NCBI GenBank assembly: GCA_011109175.1
Contig: RDEW01000032.1
Span: 238,749 to 302,748, forward strand
Origin: Dicyema japonicum
Taxonomy: Eukaryota; Animalia; Dicyemida
Length of the DNA stretch: 64,000 nucleotides
Reading direction: 5' to 3'
The first letter of the stretch is position 1. The number at the start of each line of letters is the position of its first letter. Below are positions 8,690 to 41,512 of this stretch, in pieces. The notes under the pieces were generated by a model that worked only from the letters and a program-made list of their open reading frames with translations, was not told where the DNA came from and did not search any database. The position numbers were made by a program, and so were the translations under genes.

Positions 8690-9480
8690 AAACAGGGTAC
8701 ACTCTCAATGAGATTTGGTGGTCTTGGATTCGCTGCTCTCAGATGTTTCTCTTGCCTCGTATTTTTCTTATGAAGAGGCTTTGAATACGTCGGTCAGGAG
8801 AATTCTACACTCTTCTCCTGAATTCTCAATCGACCAGGATGTCAGTCAAGCTTGTAACCATTTTATTTGTTCTCATTCTATCCAAGATTCGTAGCGCAGA
8901 CTGCACGATGTTGTTCAAAAACCTCAAACCAGCAACGTTGTTTCTGCATGTTGTATGGAGATTCTACGAGAGTGGGGCCTGGCTCAACGCCATGTTCCAC
9001 GTCCGGTGACAGATCGACGGCTTCTATCTACACCCACTATCCTGTATAAAGGAGTGCTGTAAGGTCTCCCAGACACAAAGCCCTAAACGAAGTCGTCAGG
9101 CGGTCTATAGATGCAGCTGGTTATCTTCTCTGCTAGAACCTATCTGTTTATGCAGTAATTATAGAAAACGACAAAACGGGATGTTCGACTTTCTGTTTGA
9201 AGCCAAGAGCCTCTGTCTAGGACGTCACTAGTCGGACACATATGTTGCGAGCGATATTTGCTAGAGTGCATCCAAACCTTGCTCGGTCGAGGCAAAAACC
9301 TAAATCTAGGAAAATAGAATTATGCTGATGGATTATGTTTACTCTTCTCGTTGTGGAAACATTCGGTACTCTCGACGCTGGAATTTCTAAATCAACTAGG
9401 GAGTCTGCGCTTGTGAACCCTACTGACTATTCGAGCGTGTTTCGCTTGCAATTTGAGAGTAAATAGCAATGCGTTTTAAG
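8690..9480 (+). mobile_element. CRE-clade-like non-LTR retrotransposon 3' remnant (RLE endonuclease region)
   Basis: Broken frames give MRFGGLGF, GAWLNAM, RHKALNEVVRRSIDAAG, DVT and LVVETFG, in the order seen in CRE-type ORFs. Confidence 0.7.
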
Positions 9481-11760: not shown

Positions 11761-13139
11761 ATTAATGGGGTTGTGGGATTCTTTATATTTTCTGTAACAG
11801 GCAAAGTACGCTGCCTACCAATGCAAGAAAAGAGAAGATCTCTAGTCTTTGTAGTTGTGAAAACCCCTCAAGTGGAGTGGAAAGAGCAAACACTCTTTTT
11901 CCGACTACCCTATCCCTGGGTGTTCCTCAGACAAATGGATCCAATAAAGCCACTTACTACTATAGCACTTTTGTCCCACTAAGCACTTATAGTATCCCTT
12001 AGGTAAGTATAGTATCCCATAAAAGAACGAGGAACAGAAGGAACGAAAAAACGTGAGAGGAATCTTTCTCATCCGGTATATTCACAATTTCATTGATTTT
12101 ATAAGATTTCGTAATTTTTAAAAAACTATAAAGTGCGGATTTATCACTGCGAATCTGGACAAGTCTAGAAGTTTAGACAAGTCCTGCCTTTTAAGCTTTA
12201 CAAGTCGCTGGGATAAGCAGTTTTTTAAGCATAGACATCACTTGTTGGACATGCATACTCAGACTGTTAGATGAGCGTTATTACAGGAAAAAACATTTAA
12301 GAGTATAATCTTTTGGAGAGAAAATAGTGTAATGTCCACCGCGAAATAGTTGTGAGAATCTTCAAGGAATAATACACTAAGAAAGAAAGGCTGAATAGTC
12401 CGTTCGATGCCATTTCGGCATTGGATGGGACAGATGAAACACGTGGCGCCTGACTAATCAGAATCAGGAATAAAAGAAAAAGGAATAGAAGCTTTTGACT
12501 AAGTGCTCTGCAGAAGTCGACCCATGGTATCGCCTTAGTAAAGTAACTCAGCCGTCACTAGTCTGTAAAAGACCAGCGGCTATTATGTATGATTCAGATT
12601 CCACGAATGTGAAGCGTTTAGGTCTAAAACATAAAAATATAATTTAATTTTTTTTATGTTTTTATTTTTTAAATAATTTTAAATATTTATTTTGCATGCT
12701 CTTGTTATCTCACACTTAGTAGTTATAACTTTAACATTTCTATTAATTCAATGATGTCTGGAATTGCCGTATGATTTGGTGATTACATTTATAATCTCTG
12801 AGAATCATGTATTAATGTAAATGAATCAAATTATTCCATAGCCTCATGATTTATAGTTTTCTTATAATCATAGTGATAATAGCCCTTTACGTAGAGGCGT
12901 ACTAATATTTCATTACTAAACCTTTATTTATTAACCCCTGCCTTACAATCCTTTTGGTAAGCCCAGCACAAGCAGTAATAACTAATTTATCCAAGGGAGA
13001 ACGTCTGCTCGTGTCGACCAAATCCATTCGCCAATAGTCCATTATACGTTTCTGAAAAGAGGTGTAGAAGTAGGTCTGCGGTCTTCCATTTTCATTGAAT
13101 GTCCTACCGTCGCGGACATCACTTAATTCTACGACGGAA

Positions 13140-13600
13140 AGGTTTTGATAATTGTTATCTTAGAAAGATCCTTTGTTCTGAAGTGCGAAAAGAGGATCAA
13201 TGTTTTAAAATGTTTATCTGGAATATGGAAGACAGGTAACCACCCAGTCTTGATGAACATTTACAAGCAATACATCGAACCATGCTTCTCGTACGCGTGT
13301 GTTTCGTGGGGACCTTCATTATCATGGAAGGCTTTCAGGACGTTCAAAAGAAGGCTTTCAGAATGACGGAGCGATGGTCTTGTGGGAGACACAGAACCGG
13401 ACCGACTACTCTGGAGGCCCTCATTAAACAAAACTCCGGCATGCGGGAAGGTGGCCCTGCAAATACAGTCAGCCGCCCTGTACGAGCTTGTGTGGGTACG
13501 AGGGAGGAGCACCGGGAAAGAATGAGGATTTTGGCGGAGCGCATCGAGATCACGTGATAGTTAGTTTTGGTTTTACCGTGGTCTTAGGGGACTCGTCGCC
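13140..13600 (+). mobile_element. LINE (I/Jockey-group) ORF2 3' end and tail
   Basis: KRINVLKCLSGIW...LMNIYKQYIEPCFSYACVSWG (post-RT thumb motif), followed by the GATCACGTGATAGTTAGTTTTGGTTTTACCGTGG tail also seen at about 38620 and (minus) about 53260-53290. Confidence 0.75.
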
Positions 13601-14953
13601 TTACAAATGGGATCTTTTTAACGAGTCTCCTTCGGATTAGAACCCACCGCTGCAATCCGATGTCATCAGACTTTACGTTCACCAAAACCTTTATTTTGGC
13701 AGGACACATGTCTTATTCTAAGAGCAAATGGACAGTCGTTAATCAACAGTAAGAAAGGGACCAAGGCATCAGGATATTTTAAACTTTTTTATTTTAGGTT
13801 GAATGCGAATTCCTAGCAGGTTACGAATGACTCGTCAATACATAAGACTGTCGATGCATGAAACCTTCAGCTCAGTACAGTTAAAGTCCTCATCTCTTTA
13901 TTGTGATATAACCTCTCGTCCCAAAGGAAACATCAGACGCACCAATGTCTGGTTCGAATCTCATTCGCCCCAAAACGGAGTTGCTTTGAAAAGTCTGCTT
14001 TGAGGAGAAATAAGGGAATTATTAGTCACAAATATGAAGAAACAAACTTTCTACCAAACAATTATAATACGGTTTGCTTGTTAGTGCAAAAAAGGATCAA
14101 CGACTTTAGGAAGACATGTTTGATTTCTTTATCGGTCAGCATCACAATACAACTTTAATCCGAAAGAGGTAGTTTGGCACTGTCATGTATCTACCACTAG
14201 GCAAACTATTTCGTAGTTGCTTGGTAGAGGAGAAAGGTTGTGTCTGCTCACTACGAATGCTGAGTTTACCTCGCAGAGACCAACATGAAAACCAACTTCC
14301 ATTGCTACAAAATTGAAGATAAAGGCTTGTATCATAGTGAAGCTAAGAAGACATTCTGACAATAGAGGTACGTCACCGCCTCAACCATCCGACAAATTAA
14401 CTGTCTACAAGATTCCGATAAGAAATGTCTATAAATTTATTTTTTAACAAAAAAAGTTGAGAAACTTATTTTCGATAAATTTAAATTTTTATTTTTCTAA
14501 AAAAATTTAAAAACCACACAAAAATCAATTTCTATTGTAGTGGTGCTGAAAGAATTTTAGCGTGGAACATTTAATAAGAATTCCTCAAATGGAAACTCAG
14601 CTACAATTCAAATTTGTACCACACGAGATTCGAATCCAGACATTTGCTGAAACCCGATATTATGAACAATAGAAGCGTCGGATGCACATTGGACCCATCA
14701 GCGAATCTCGTGCATTTAAAAATTGGAAAAAATGAGAATTATCTATGATTAGTTGCATACGGGATGATGGTGGAAACGGACATTCATCCCCGGAGCATAT
14801 CTCCCTTGCAGACATTAAAGGGAATTGTCATGAGTCAGGACCACAGGTTTTTTTATTACTGACAATTACCACACAGACTGGTTAAAATGTCATGGATACT
14901 GCCACATAAATTTTCGGATATAAATACAGCGAATTAACTCGAATGGAAAAATA

Positions 14954-15205
14954 ATGCGATTTGTAGTATTTTTTGGTATATTAAATATTTCATGCTTAGT
15001 CCTCTTTGCTCTTCTTTTGACCTTCACAGCCCAGGCTGATTCTTCTGTATTAATGAAACTATAATATATTAGACTAATGCTACCACCAATGCTACTACGG
15101 TAGCTCCAAATGGACTGACTAGTGGAATTCTTGCAAAATGTAGTTTACTGTAAACATGTAGATGTGATCCCAAGTACTCTACTTGGATACTTGCTCTTTA
15201 ACTAA
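14954..15205 (+). CDS. 59-aa secreted, probably GPI-anchored micro-glycoprotein (CD52/CD24-like architecture, not homology)
   Basis: Exons 14954-14975, 15000-15046, 15073-15139 and 15162-15205 with GT-AG introns of 24, 26 and 22 nt give MRFVVFFVLFALLLTFTAQADSSTNATTNATTVAPNGLTSGILAKYVIPSTLLGYLLFN*. The frame stays open across two frame-shifting introns; it has a signal peptide, two N-A-T sequons and a hydrophobic C-terminus. Confidence 0.8.
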
Positions 15206-15779
15206 CAAGCTTGTCACATTTGGGTTCGTTATAAACTAATATTTTGACTTGTTATTTTTTTTACAATTCGAATATTTAAGTGAATTTTGTTTTTGGTTAC
15301 TTTAAGTCTTTCGGTGTTTTCCCCTCCACCCCACTGAGCGGTTCCTACACGGTGGACAGTGCCGCGGTTCATCTGTCTTGAAGATGCGAGTATAAAATTA
15401 GTTTAGAGCCCAGACAGTCAAAGTAGGTGACTTTTATGTGATATTTTGCGATTTTTAAATTACTAGTGACACTAATGAGCGTCCAATTGGGGACCCGCCA
15501 TTTGCCGAAAACTACTAATTTCACTAATTTTCTGAAAAAACTACGTATTTTAATTCTAAGTCGACAGTAACTCGGTTTATTCAATTATTTTCAATATTTC
15601 TAACAATGTTGTAAATAATTGACAGTGAAACAAAAACAACAACAAAAACCTACTTCAAAAATCTGACACATTTTTAACTTCCATCATATTTTCAAACGGT
15701 GTTCTGTGAAACAATTTCGTGTGTGCAGACACCTCTAGAAAAATTACGATTACTGTGGCGCAAAAATAATTTTTTTGAA

Positions 15780-15950
15780 AACCTCTCCCCTAACCTTAAA
15801 AATAACCCGAAAGATTTATTCATGAACCCTTTCCTAAACCCTAATTTAAAATTCTACGACATTTTCAGGCCGACAGAAACCTTAACCAAAACCTTAAACG
15901 TAATCACTGCCCCAACCTAACGCATCAACCTAATCTTAACCGTAACTGTC
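15780..15950. repeat. Degenerate CCTAA/CCCTAA-rich tract inside an unclassified repeat
   Basis: Multiple imperfect (A)ACCCTAA/AACCTAA units; TTAATTTAAAATTCTACGACATTTTCA at about 15842 recurs at about 62905; a roughly 25-nt direct repeat (TTTTCTTAGTGATTCTTCGTT) follows at about 15974 and 16029. Confidence 0.45.
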
Positions 15951-16099
15951 TCCTCGGGAAACGACAATTAAACTTTTCTTAGTGATTCTTCGTTTCACAA
16001 CAAACATTTTTTTTAACGACAACTAAAATTTTCTTAGTGATTCTTCGTTCCGTTGCTATCTGAGAGACAACATGCTTCAATTATTTTTTATTTATAGTT

Positions 16100-16760
16100 C
16101 GCGGTTACTTAACAAAGGAAAAATTCCTTTTCTAGAAGCTATTGAATTTTCTTGTCTTTTCCTGTACCAGTTTGATCAATCTGTTGTTTGATTGACAATT
16201 TAAACTTGGGATGTCTCTTCAAAGACTGTTAATCATTTTACTTCAGTATTCATCACTTGAAACCAATAAATCTCGAAATCCACTGAGTTGCAGATTTAAA
16301 TGATGAACGTATATTGGTGGAGGAATTCGAGCAAAGATGGACAGTCCTTGTAGTTATAGGAACAGATTTTTTATGTATCTTAAACTGGGAGTACGTGAGA
16401 AAGGTGAATGATAAAACGGTACTCTGGTAGAACAATGTAAGGAATGGAGGAAACGACGGGAAACTTGCGACCAAGTAGTAAGTGGAGGGGATCACACCCA
16501 AGTTCACTGCTGTATGACCTCCTTGCCACTAAGCAGGCATGTTTCTTGGTATAGAATTAGCCAGTACATCAAATGGGGGACATTCAGTTATTGGAGCAAT
16601 TTGTTCAGTATATTTGGAATTTATTAGTTTTCTTAGAAAGCCATTTTCATTCCAATTTGTAGCTTTCTGATAGAGTAGGCTCAACAACTTTATTTAAACA
16701 ATCAATTCGAGGACCATACGGCTGCAACCCTAACGGTCTGGGTATACTCTCTTCAGGATT
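16100..16760 (-). mobile_element. Possible Penelope-like RT remnant
   Basis: Minus-strand fragments FDVLANSIP and NWYRK resemble PLE RT motifs (FDVxSLFTNIP, xWYRKPT); heavily degraded. Confidence 0.3.
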
Positions 16761-16989
16761 GGCAGTGAGATTCGCTCAAATAGTCACCATCGCTCGCAGA
16801 GATCGTCTCGAAATCTGATTCCTTAGTCGACCCAGGAAAGCGAGAGTCGAAGTCACAAAGGTACCGGACGTTTGTATTTCCAGTGGAAAGAACAAAACAT
16901 CGACGGTTTTGGTCTTTCGGTTTTCTCTCGACCGACAGGTTCTCGAGGCACTTCTAGCTGTTTTATTTATATCAGCTGATAAAGGATAA

Positions 16990-17960
16990 TATATCTGATT
17001 TCCTACAATTTATTTAAAATTTCAACGTGTAAGAAATCTGGGGTTTCTGAGAGGAGGATATTACGGGTTTTTCTTCCAACCGATTTCTGTAGAAACAACT
17101 AAAGTGCTTAACCCAGCATATAGAATTCGTCGAATCAATGGGCTGATTTACAGCTAAAATGCATTGGCTTAGGATCATGAGGAGTAATCCATTCACCATG
17201 GACGATGCATTACAAGACTGGGTGCGCCTACTCAGTTTTGCGCCTCATGCTTTTGAACTTGATCGAGATGATCACGGAAAGGTGTTTCTCGCTGACCAAC
17301 ATTCGTTTTTTTATGAGAGGTACCCAAATCTCCAGTTTCCCATATCTTTAAGCATACGCGGGAGACACATAGTAAAACATGAAGTAGAAGTTCTCCGTCA
17401 TAAAAATATGTTTACTCTAAGTTAATCGAAGGTAGTACCCGGGCAGCCATCTGGGCACTTTTCTCAAGTGGAACACGAAAACCACAAGTCCATCCTAGCC
17501 CTAACGAATTACTTCAAAGGTATTCAGATAGTTTTGTCTAAACAGTGGTGATTTCCACATCACTATTTACTTGGTCGAAGGATTCCTTTCTGCTCTTTGT
17601 CAGTCCATACTAACCTTAGGAAGCAAATGGACCCCACAATATCCGTACAGGTAACAGAGAAGATCCTGGTTATCTTATCATTTATTTCAGCTGATATAAA
17701 GGACCACATTCGAACTGGAAATTTTTACTACGATCCTACACACGTTCTTGGAAAGGGCTCTAATAGAACAGTGCGGCGGATGTGTTTTCCTGGGTTGTGT
17801 GTTCTACTATTCCCTGACAGGTGGAGAACATCTTTTCGGGGATTCCTTTAATAGACAGGCTCATATTATGGAGGAAGTTGATATTTTGACAAACTCAGTG
17901 CTGAACGTGATTTTTGTTAGGTATTTAGATGATAATGCTGCAATCTCTAATTCGTAAGAT
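16990..17960 (+). pseudogene. Scrambled fragments of an IRE1-like kinase/RNase gene
   Basis: FYYDPTHVLGKGSNRTV (kinase Gly-loop) and GCVFYYSLTGGEHLFGDSFNRQAHIM (IRE1-type subdomain IX-X, cf. GCVFYYVISxGxHPFGxxxxRQANI); SFFYERYPNL resembles the RNase-domain FTSRFPxL; pieces are short and out of order. Confidence 0.6.
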
Positions 17961-18010: not shown

Positions 18011-20233
18011 CCGTGATTCTCAACCGTGGTGCATGTGCACCATTTTTGGTACATGAATAATACTCGAATGGTGCATGGAAAAAAATTGGTACATGGTATT
18101 ATTTTTTAAATATTTTTTATTATCAGTAATTAGTTCATTACGATGGTTAACCATTATCATTTGATACTTATAAATACTCGTGTCAATCACATGTCTGGTG
18201 GTAATTCTCGTACTCTTCGGATTTATCGTAAAGATTGTCTGAAATATGGATTTATCCCTTCCAGTGGATACAATTCTAAGCCTTTTTGTATAATCTGCAA
18301 AAATTCTTTTGCCAATAGTTTCATGAAATTGTCAAGATTAACACACCATTTGAGGACTAGACATCCAAATCTAATCGGATCTTCGCTTGAATATTTTCAA
18401 AATATAAAAAACAAGATTGATGAACCTACTACCCTTCAAAAGTTAATCGCTCATCATGCTCTTGCACGAAAAAGTATTCATTTTAACCTATTTCATAGAT
18501 GTGTTACTTGCATCCTACAAAATTGCCCACATTGTTGCTAAAAATAATGCTACCCATGTTTCGGGTGAATCGTTAATAATACCTTTTATCGCAGTTGTTT
18601 TACAAGATATGTTGGGACATAATCTATCTGAAATTTTACAAGTAGTGCGACCATTTTGATGTTCCTAGAATTTACATTTGAGTAATGATACGATTCGTCG
18701 CCGAATTGACGAAATGGCTGAAAGCGTCGAGGATTCCTAAAAAATATACTTAGAAAAACTGTTTTTCCTTGCAGATTGACGAATGTCTGTTATGTGATAA
18801 TAAATCTATATTAATGGCCTATGTTAGGTAGGTATTTTAAATAATATTTTGCTTAGATTTTTTGACAAACAAGTAGTTTTTTGTGAAGAGGTTTTGTTTA
18901 TCAGACCTTTGATAACAGACTCTACCGGAGAGTCAATTTTTAATGTATTGAAAACTTATTTTGAAGAAAAAAAATTCCATTTTCCAATTTAATCACATGT
19001 GCTACGGACGGTGCAATAGTCATGGTTGGCAAGTACAAAGGATTTGCGTCTTTTTTGAAACAAAAATGTCAGAATTTAATTCATATTCATTGCGTATTAC
19101 ACCGCCATCATCTGGTTTCAAAAAAAATCTTCGCTTTTTTAAATCAAGTGCTGAATCTCGTCATAAAAACGATCAATCGAATTAAAACAAGTCCAAAATC
19201 TGATAGGATCTTTAGGAAATTTTGTATAGATAGGAATGAAGATTATTTAAGACTCTTGTATCATACTAAGTTTATTTTAGAGTTTTTTATATTCTTTAGG
19301 TTCGCTGGTTGTCCAAAGGCACTGCTTTACAAAGATTTGTAAACTTTTTACCAGCTATTTTGGACTTTCTTGAATCGGAAAAAGAAGAGGAATTAGCAAG
19401 ATCGATTTCAGAAAATGAGAAATATATCTATTATTTAAATTGGATTTTTGATAAATTGAATGAAATTTCCTTGAAATTGCAGAGAAATTTTGTAACTATG
19501 TTTGACGTCAGAGTTACAATAATTACATTTTGTGAAAAGTTAAAGGATTATAGACATAACATTCAGGAGAATACGATTTTCTATATCCAGTATGTGAAGC
19601 ATTTAATCAATTTGATATAAAAATTTTTGTTGACCATCTAATTAATTTGGAAAAGGAAATGACAATCAGATTTGAAGACGTGATTAATATGGAAATACCA
19701 AGATGGATGATAAATCCTTTTTTGACTAGCACTGTAGAGGTGCAAATGGATTTGCAAGATGAATTTATTGGTATTTTTATCATTATTATTTTTATAGAAA
19801 TTAAATATAATTATTCTTACAAGATTTTGTTTGAAAACCAAGATTTGTCTACCTTTTGAAGAAAAAAGGAATTTAAAGACAAATATCCAAAGATTTGGGA
19901 ACAAATAATTAAAATTTTATTATGTTTTCCAACGACATATCTTGTGGAATCAGGATTCAGCGTAGTAAACAGGATATTGAGCGATGAACGTAACAAGCTT
20001 GATATCTGCTCGCAAAAAGATGTCAGATTATTTTCAACACGCTTAGACCCTGATATTCAGAAACTAGTTAAATGCATGAAAACCAAGGCTCTCATTAAAT
20101 AGTTAAAAAAAGATTTTAAGTCCTAAATTTAATTAAAAGAATAAATAAGTCTTTGTTTCTTTGGTACACGAAATAACTTGGTTTGGTACACTGATTTTTT
20201 TTGGTACACCAAAAAAAAGGTTGAGAATCACTG
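18011..20233 (+). mobile_element. hAT transposon, Buster family, complete termini, intron-containing transposase
   Basis: TIRs C(C/A)GTGATTCTCAACC at 18011 and 20233; perfect 8-bp TSD GACTAGAC (18003-18010 and 20234-20241) with central TA. Transposase motifs: KYGFI, FCIIC, LTHHLRTRHP, LSNDTIRRRIDEM, QIDE, CATDGA, HCVLHRHHL, HT-VRWLSKG, FPTTYLVESGFS. One in-frame TGA near 19858 plus several 1-nt deletions. Confidence 0.95.
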
Positions 20234-39265: not shown

Positions 39266-39683
39266 TTCCATACGCCAATGGAGAAGTCCTCACAATGGCA
39301 GATTCTTGGAAAAGATACATTGAGTGTGAGTCCTTTTATAGACGATCCGGTTCTTTAGTGAGATGTTCACATGACGACGTCACTCGTAAAGCCAAGCATC
39401 GTAGATGGGTGTAACCTTCAGCTGTACAGCAGCGAGATTCTAACTATGGCCCATTACGTTACACTGATCGTAATAATACGTGAGAATTTGCTCGAATTAA
39501 ACCACTCGAAGTCACTCAAAGAATATTTTTGTAGAAGCCACGAGCGAGCTCTCAAAATTCGAAATTTAAATTTGTTAGTGGTTGATAACGCCAGAATGCA
39601 ATGGTAAAAATTAGTTGTGGTTAGCGCACGTGATATAATTGTCTTAATGTCAAAACTACGATATTGAGTGAATTACCCATTAC

Positions 39684-40818
39684 ATGATGAGGAAATATGT
39701 GGAAACTTTAATCACTTATTCTTAGCAATCAGGCACTGTCGTGGGAGTCGAAGATTTGAATCCAGAACTGGATGCCTCAATTTTGCGGAAGGCAATGAAA
39801 GGAATAGGTATTGGAAGATCATACATACAGGAACCAACGAGGAGGCGCTAATAAACATTTTATGCACAAGACGAATTTTCAAAGGCAGGTGATAGCTGAA
39901 GAGTACAAGTCAAACTACGGGCGGGTATTTCAATCAAATTGACCTTAAAGGACTTGAAAGACGACATTCACGGAGAAACCGGTGGAAATTTTAGAAATCT
40001 GCTACTCGGTCTTTTAGAAGAGGAAGTTGATTACGACACAAGAGAGCTTAATAAAGCCATCAAAGTCGATTCATTTCCTCACATGTAGGGTCTGGGAAGT
40101 GATGAAGAGGTTTTGATTGAAATTATTTGCACGAGGACTAGCCAACAGCTTGAAGCCATAAAAATGAATTACGAGAAAAGTATTCAGTCTGTTAACTTCC
40201 TCAGTGTTTGATCGAACACTGGAAGAAGACATCTGTGATGATATTAGCGGAGACTTAAAGAGAATAATTATATCACTTTTACAGAATAATCGAGAAACGG
40301 GGACACTTATGACCTGTAAATTTAATTTATTAGTATTTAGAGATGAAGTTATAGAGGATGTTGAATCCCTTCAAAATGCAGGGACTGAAACATGGGGGAC
40401 TGATGAGTCAGTGTTCAACAGAATAATGGCAAATCGATCATTTCCACATCTCCAAGGACTTTTCCAGGAATACCTCGAACGAACGGGGAATCAATTTGAG
40501 GATGTACTTAAAGAAGAAATGACTGGTGATCTTCTCAAAGCATATTTGGCCATAGTCCAATGTGTTGTCGATAGGCCTGGATTCTTTGCTAGAAAATTAT
40601 CAGATGCAATGAAAGGAATGGGAACAAACGAGGATACATTGTCGAGAATTATCATATCGAGAAGCGAGGTGGATTTGGTTCAAATCATGGAATGGTACGG
40701 CATATTAACCGATGAGAGTCTCGCTTTGAGAGTAGAGGTCTTTTTAGTGAAGATTTATCTATAGGCGGAAACAAGTGGGGACTATCAAAGAGCGCTACTC
40801 ACACTAATAGGAAACTGA
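39684..40818 (+). CDS. ANX: Annexin (at least 7 exons, 23-27 nt introns; one apparent 1-nt deletion near 39870)
   Basis: Introns 39699-39725, 39808-39830, 39925-39950, 40065-40088, 40180-40204 and 40738-40764 (possibly also about 40312-40336). They yield four annexin repeats: KAMKGIGTNEEALINIL, KAIKGLGSDEEVLIEII, AGTETWGTDESVFNRIM and DAMKGMGTNEDTLSRIIISRSE...ETSGDYQRALLTLIGN*. Confidence 0.92.
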
Positions 40819-41359
40819 TTCCTAACACATTTCGTTAAAATAATATTAATTGGTGAGACCCATTTGTACCCCTATTCCACTAAGGACTCTACTAGGGATA
40901 CACTATCTAATGGTGATCAAGAACCAAGACCTATAAACAGCTTGAAAATTAGAGAACCTGGATACAATTATTACCAAAACCCTATGGGGACTATTTGAGC
41001 ACATATTACGGATGAACACTCTTCTTGCTTACAATAATATGGAATCATACTTCTTCTGCTCAGGGGTCTTTAGAGGAAGCCACTAACATTTTTGACATCA
41101 ATAATGAATATTGATCTAAAAATGTTAAAGTGGCATTAGAAGACACAGGTTAACTAGATAGCTTTTAAAAAATCGAAATCTCGAGAAGAGCGTGGAGGTG
41201 TCTAACAGACCGGATCATATGGGTGGCCCAAGCGCTTGGGAGATTATAACTTTCTTATTGGAATGCGCATTATAATAATTCCACGAAATGACTATTTAGC
41301 TTCATAATGAAAAAAAGCTGTATTTTTTGTTAGCATAGATGACGTGATAACTCAGGAGT

Positions 41360-41512
41360 AAATATTGAAGATCATACATATAGGGTAAACGAAGAGGCGC
41401 TAATAAGCATTTTATGCACAAGGACGATTTTTCAAAGGCAGGTGATAGCTGAACAGTCCAAAGCAAGCTACGGACGGGTATTTCAATCACATTGATCTTA
41501 AAGACTTAAAAG
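41360..41512 (+). pseudogene. Partial genomic duplicate of annexin exon 3 with flanking introns
   Basis: EEALISILCTRTIFQRQVIAEQSKASYGR followed by the intron GTATTTCAATCACATTGATCTTAAAG; highly similar to 39815-39960. Confidence 0.9.

Follow-up and report, generated by a model that had tools for sequence, protein, structure and literature searches.

The vertebrate protein CD52 is made as a precursor of about 60 residues that consists of a signal peptide, a very short N-glycosylated core and a C-terminal hydrophobic signal; the peptide is chiefly a glycan carrier, its omega and omega+2 residues form a canonical small pair, and its anchor has been shown experimentally. CD24, a gene of the vertebrate lineage, encodes about 80 aa, and its mucin-like core, rich in S, T and N, contains N-x-T sequons; its GPI signal is moderately hydrophobic, with many S, T and L residues. 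In Trypanosoma cruzi, the small GPI-anchored mucins TcSMUG and TcMUC form multicopy families with O-glycan acceptor repeats. The micro-exon genes (MEGs) of schistosomes have symmetric internal exons of 6–36 nt (multiples of 3) and introns of normal size.

Here we analyzed a candidate gene in a 64-kb stretch of DNA (the window) from Dicyema japonicum, a parasite of the octopus kidney. An earlier note, made from the sequence alone, had proposed a product with CD52/CD24-like architecture and a GPI anchor. The likeness stands for architecture and composition: the predicted product has the precursor size and three-part layout of CD52, and resembles CD24 in its small S/T/N-rich core with N-x-T sequons and its moderately hydrophobic end. 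It does not extend to detectable homology (no candidate in the collection searched had as many as three 5-residue words in common with the product). CD52 has no sequence similarity to the candidate, its tail is more hydrophobic and its omega site is canonical, whereas the omega site of the candidate is non-canonical and its anchor a guess. CD24 is longer (about 80 vs 59 aa), and the resemblance, being one of low complexity, cannot be taken as homology. Neither homology nor shared gene structure places the product in the CD52/CD24 family; the two proteins are analogies and not relatives of the candidate.

The closest parasite analogue is provided by the small GPI mucins of trypanosomes, lineage-specific and fast-evolving components of a parasite surface coat in which a signal peptide and a GPI signal flank a short Thr-rich core. 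These are multicopy, whereas read depth marks the candidate as single-copy, the window holds no paralogue of it, and its core consists of only two T-N-A-T units. Schistosome MEGs are similar in that a parasitic spiralian uses very short exons, missed by ORF-based views, to encode proteins that are secreted or lie at the surface. The candidate differs from them in having asymmetric internal exons of 47 and 67 nt, outside the symmetric 6–36-nt type, and in having minute introns instead.

We tentatively favour the reading that this locus is a real, lineage-specific dicyemid secretory micro-gene with a C-terminal anchor signal. As a micro-gene the candidate is plausible and well observed; its CD52-like role and its GPI anchor are speculative.

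Reading frame and predicted product

Translation of 14954–15205 exactly reproduced the coordinates, the three introns (24, 26 and 22 nt) and the 59-aa open frame reported in the earlier note. The ATG lies at 14954 and the TAA at 15203–15205, and exons of 22, 47, 67 and 44 nt yield a spliced CDS of 180 nt; without splicing, the frame from this ATG encodes 36 aa only. All features of the gene and its flanks described below lie on the + strand, and every predicted intron has the form GTA...TAG. Introns 2 and 3 shift the frame and only intron 1 is in frame, in agreement with the two frame-shifting introns originally described.

Exon 1 (14954–14975, 22 nt coding) carries the start codon and the first 7 residues of the signal peptide. 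It is followed by putative intron 1 (14976–14999, 24 nt, GC 0.21) and by exon 2 (15000–15046, 47 nt), which supplies the remainder of the signal peptide, the A-Q-A cleavage motif and D-S-S. Putative intron 2 (15047–15072, 26 nt, GC 0.15) carries an in-frame TAA, and its removal is the only route past that stop. Exon 3 (15073–15139, 67 nt) encodes a T/N-rich core with two N-A-T sequons, followed by V-A-P-N-G-L-T-S-G-I-L-A-K. Beyond putative intron 3 (15140–15161, 22 nt, GC 0.32), the coding part of exon 4 (15162–15205, 44 nt) encodes the hydrophobic C-terminal tail and the TAA stop.

The predicted product opens with M-R and a 15-residue hydrophobic run (mean hydropathy 2.8), and A-Q-A precedes D21. 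Rule-based scoring thus finds a basic n-region, a hydrophobic h-region and small residues at −3 and −1, and the signal-peptide-like start described earlier, including its A-x-A site, is present in every splice variant. The two N-x-T sequons and the S/T-rich core of the note likewise hold, with N-A-T sequons at N25 and N29 and nine S/T among residues 21–41. The C-terminal 14–18 residues have a mean Kyte-Doolittle hydropathy of 1.2–1.3, are uncharged except for one Lys and end the protein without a cytosolic tail; K, P, S, T and G all occur in the tail.

The three predicted splices are not equally firm. Since the TAA sits inside intron 2, this intron is indispensable, and every one of the 68 paths found to exceed the unspliced frame in length uses it; it is the only one of the three whose removal is forced by a stop codon. 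Intron 1, being in frame and stop-free, is optional, and its retention would give a 67-aa product whose start is still signal-peptide-like. For intron 3, a rival at 15150–15174 (25 nt, GTA...AAG) would give a 58-aa product whose last eight residues are unchanged, whereas non-GTA choices lead to other tails, ending at 15239 or 15247. The hydrophobic C-terminus is therefore kept under both GTA options for intron 3, and under those only, and the N-terminal 45 residues are robust to splice choice. Allowing additional or longer introns beyond the TAA, so as to read a longer gene, produced only alternative tails, which were unconvincing.

Intron type and genomic context

Outside D. japonicum, introns of 22–26 nt would, to our knowledge, be implausible in nearly all animals. 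In this species, according to a 2026 comparative study (PMC13644364), only GTa remains of the 5' splice signal and only AG of the 3' signal, there is no polypyrimidine tract, and introns number in the thousands at every length between 20 and 27 bp. Our reference for native introns within the window comprised one hAT intron and the introns of an annexin gene (39684–40817), placed by homology to database annexins. The annexin has six introns of 27, 23, 26, 24, 25 and 27 nt, four of which begin GTAT or GTC. Collecting introns without supervision, by rescuing ORFs throughout the window, gave too much noise for a length peak to emerge. Because 20–27-nt GTa...AG introns are standard in this genome, and six annexin introns of 23–27 nt accompany them here, the tiny GT-AG introns of the earlier note are credible in type; judged by length and splice signals, the putative introns of the candidate are of the type native to D. 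japonicum.

Base composition is consistent with this division into exons and introns, with a GC content of 0.40 in the candidate exons, as in the annexin exons (0.40), 0.22 in the candidate introns and 0.37 in the flanks. The low intron value is partly a by-product, since stop-rich stretches are what splicing removes, and to that extent would also be forced in a frame assembled by chance.

For D. japonicum, the genome paper gives a GC content of 36.7%, a repeat content of 49%, many LINE elements and introns averaging 38 bp. The window has 36% GC and is crowded with LINE, hAT and integrase debris. A hAT/Buster-like transposase in it contains a 25-nt micro-intron (18474–18498, GTATT...ATAG) that joins two frames, and four further introns claimed for this transposase could not be placed by simple frame-joining. 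The four-repeat annexin gene has a 1-nt deletion near 39868–39875 (ACAAG-GACG vs ACAAGGACG in a nearby fragment), so that the frame is lost between I-L-C-T-R and T-N-F-Q-R-Q; either the gene is a pseudogene or a GG run was misassembled. Another, incomplete copy of the annexin at 41340–41500 is 86% identical over about 150 nt, with its first-intron donor changed from GTATT to ATATT, and is a decaying duplicate.

Expectation by chance

The locus could also be a chance frame, in which T-rich, repeat-rich non-coding DNA happens to offer an ATG and a hydrophobic reading that is extended through abundant short GT...AG pairs, with no transcription or splicing. We consider this explanation somewhat unlikely. 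It was weighed by enumerating, from every ATG on both strands, all paths with up to three GT...AG introns of 20–28 nt, and by requiring at least two introns, a rule-based signal peptide and a final 14 residues that are hydrophobic and uncharged. As a null model, the window was simulated 1600 times with an order-3 Markov chain.

Signal-peptide-like spliced frames are common under this model, at 1.6 per simulated window, so that, if the candidate is a chance frame, it stands as a warning that free-hand splicing in tiny-intron genomes yields about 1.6 such frames per 64 kb. Adding the tail, with at least two introns, reduces the number to 0.09 qualifying loci per window, a value that still leaves room for chance, as does the fact that past codon 31 only 28 further open codons are needed, reached via two freely chosen introns. 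The many alternative 3' solutions among the 68 paths point in the same direction. On the other side, the frequency falls to 0.025 per simulated window when an N-x-S/T sequon is also required and to 0.0025 when all donors are GTA, and none of the 1600 simulated windows combined all-GTA donors with a TATA box 20–65 nt upstream; the criteria were set after the locus had been seen, which makes these chance figures optimistic.

In the real window, the candidate is the sole qualifying locus, and the reversed window contains none; its three-part architecture with two sequons is likewise absent from the rest of the window and from the reversed copy. All three donors are GTA and all three lengths fall in the native 20–27 range. 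Moreover, the 252 nt of the locus hold five GTA...AG candidates of 20–28 nt against 1.45 expected from the density in the window, a 3.4-fold excess that speaks against a chance frame. Extrapolated to the roughly 1000 windows of a whole genome, the all-GTA rate predicts between one and three such loci by chance. Subject to that genome-wide expectation and to the post hoc choice of criteria, the simulations and counts favour a real gene.

The only other ATG in the window that has a signal-peptide-like start through two GTA...AG introns of 20–22 nt lies at 8839–9100 (+). That locus sits beside LINE fragments, has no hydrophobic tail and may be due to chance.

Flanking signals and neighbourhood

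A TATA-like box (GATATAAATA, 14917–14927) stands upstream of the candidate, its TATA beginning 35 nt ahead of the ATG, and this placement counts, weakly, against a chance frame. The annexin gene has a similar box (GATATAAT) about 50 nt ahead of its ATG. Across the window the TATA-like motif is not significantly enriched (17 seen vs 11.7 expected). The candidate ATG has an A at −3 and is overlapped by the stop of a three-codon upstream ORF (ATG GAA AAA TAA, 14943–14954). Taken literally, the TATA box would imply a 5'UTR of a few nt; a more distal start would include the upstream ORF, which would lie within the mRNA only if transcription began before 14943. Possible 3' end signals, inferred from sequence, occupy 15230–15265, where TATAAA occurs 25 nt past the stop and is followed by a T-rich run.

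The motif CACGTG is five-fold over-represented in the window as a whole (25 occurrences vs 5.0 expected; none of 100 shuffles reached 25), and one copy (39627–39632) directly precedes the annexin TATA-like box. None was found between 13556 and 21327, that is, from 1.4 kb upstream to 6 kb downstream of the candidate. We counted this absence against a gene, together with the frameshift in the nearby annexin and the position of the candidate among decayed LINE, hAT and integrase fragments; such TE-rich, gene-poor surroundings are what a chance frame would lead one to expect. Searches with Pfam on ten flanking frames and with Rfam on 13000–17500 returned nothing meaningful on either strand, and thus no rival annotation for the candidate DNA.

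Homology searches

In a search of the 59-aa product against the protein collection, no candidate shared even three 5-residue words, and a paralogue search within the 64-kb window returned self-matches only. These two blanks would fit a chance frame. For the collection, however, the result is uninformative, because an annexin exon used as a control reached only 42% identity with its best match, showing a database without this organism. A literature search on dicyemid surface glycoproteins and GPI gave no result on dicyemids.

Possible membrane-anchor signal

The GPI anchor proposed in the earlier note is a guess suggested by the tail. The extreme C-terminus is hydrophobic, moderately so at 1.2–1.3, and lacks a cytosolic tail, a feature that depends on the choice of intron 3. 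A canonical omega site could not be recognized: in a rule-based reading, Thr occupies omega+2 for each of the omega candidates N29, A30 and G37, whereas N36 and S40 fail because Leu or Ile occupies that position, and A34 precedes Pro, leaving no canonical omega triplet in the product. Weak hydrophobic ends without a cytosolic flank are typical of GPI signals, and a GPI signal is, speculatively, the most natural reading of this tail.

Alternatively, a real gene at this locus might encode either a small secreted peptide ending in a hydrophobic pro-region or a single-pass membrane micro-protein held by its C-terminal segment, with no GPI involved. The missing omega/omega+2 pair, the Lys inside an 18-residue hydrophobic stretch and the alternative third introns that alter the tail would all suit such a product. 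We nevertheless judge it quite improbable, since the hydrophobic segment closes the protein without a charged cytosolic flank, as is typical of GPI signals, and 14–18 residues at a mean hydropathy of 1.2–1.3 are short and weak for a stable transmembrane helix.

Proposed maturation and implications

Starting from the frame, the intron type and the rarity by chance shown above, we infer the following course for the micro-gene from transcription onward. An mRNA of roughly 230–300 nt would begin just past the TATA-like box, and two or three native-type micro-introns would be spliced out, and translation would give a precursor of 59 (or 67) aa. Its N-terminal signal peptide would direct entry into the ER and be cut off after A-Q-A, and the short core that begins D-S-S-T-N-A-T-T-N-A-T-T would then be N-glycosylated at N25 and N29 and probably O-glycosylated at S/T. 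The C-terminal 14–18 residues would act as a membrane-attachment signal, most likely one for GPI addition, and GPI cleavage at G37 or at N29/A30 would leave a glycopeptide of 9–17 residues on the cell surface. An immune-evasion role for this peptide would be pure conjecture.

If real, the candidate would rank with the smallest surface-glycopeptide precursors known from animals other than vertebrates and would open a way into how dicyemids meet their hosts, a subject still almost unexplored. It would further show by example how genes escape standard annotation, here in a genome for which only 5,012 are predicted; a transcriptome assembly (GHAB00000000) and stranded RNA-seq runs (PMC6736024) exist for D. 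japonicum. A broader and rather doubtful proposal is that dicyemids carry a hidden class of micro-genes encoding CD52-sized GPI-anchored glycopeptides in the ciliated surface coat that faces the cephalopod kidney, of which this locus, with its mature peptide of 9–17 residues, would be the smallest member. With every exon shorter than 70 nt, such genes would be invisible to ORF- and AUGUSTUS-type annotation.

Comparison with independent sequencing runs

Four sequencing runs of one sample were compared over 14600–15600. They showed flat depth, Nextera mate-pair junction adaptors as loose ends and no joints within the gene, which identifies them as genomic DNA libraries. All four reproduced the assembly, with zero differences inside the gene. 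Unitigs of 800 nt ran unbroken across the gene at the depth of the single-copy flanks.

These data bear on a further possibility: one of the larger genes for mucin-like surface proteins in this genome may have decayed or shrunk to the present relic, keeping its signal-peptide and tail exons and losing its repeat exons. A core of just two T-N-A-T units and the decaying genes in the neighbourhood would be expected of such a relic. We regard it as highly improbable: the frame is intact from ATG to stop, the depth and the continuous unitigs are those of single-copy sequence, and nothing else was found to resemble the product in the collection or, self-matches aside, in the window.

Variation was seen on either side of the candidate. 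Upstream, one DNA-run contig has 274 extra letters between 14646 and 14647, and the depth doubles over 14770–14837; together these suggest that an insertion polymorphism and short repeats lie about 100–300 nt upstream of the candidate (14650–14840). Downstream, at 15468–15491, 260 nt past the stop, the runs of this same sample show clustered differences from one another (G>A, A>T, A>G and single-base insertions).
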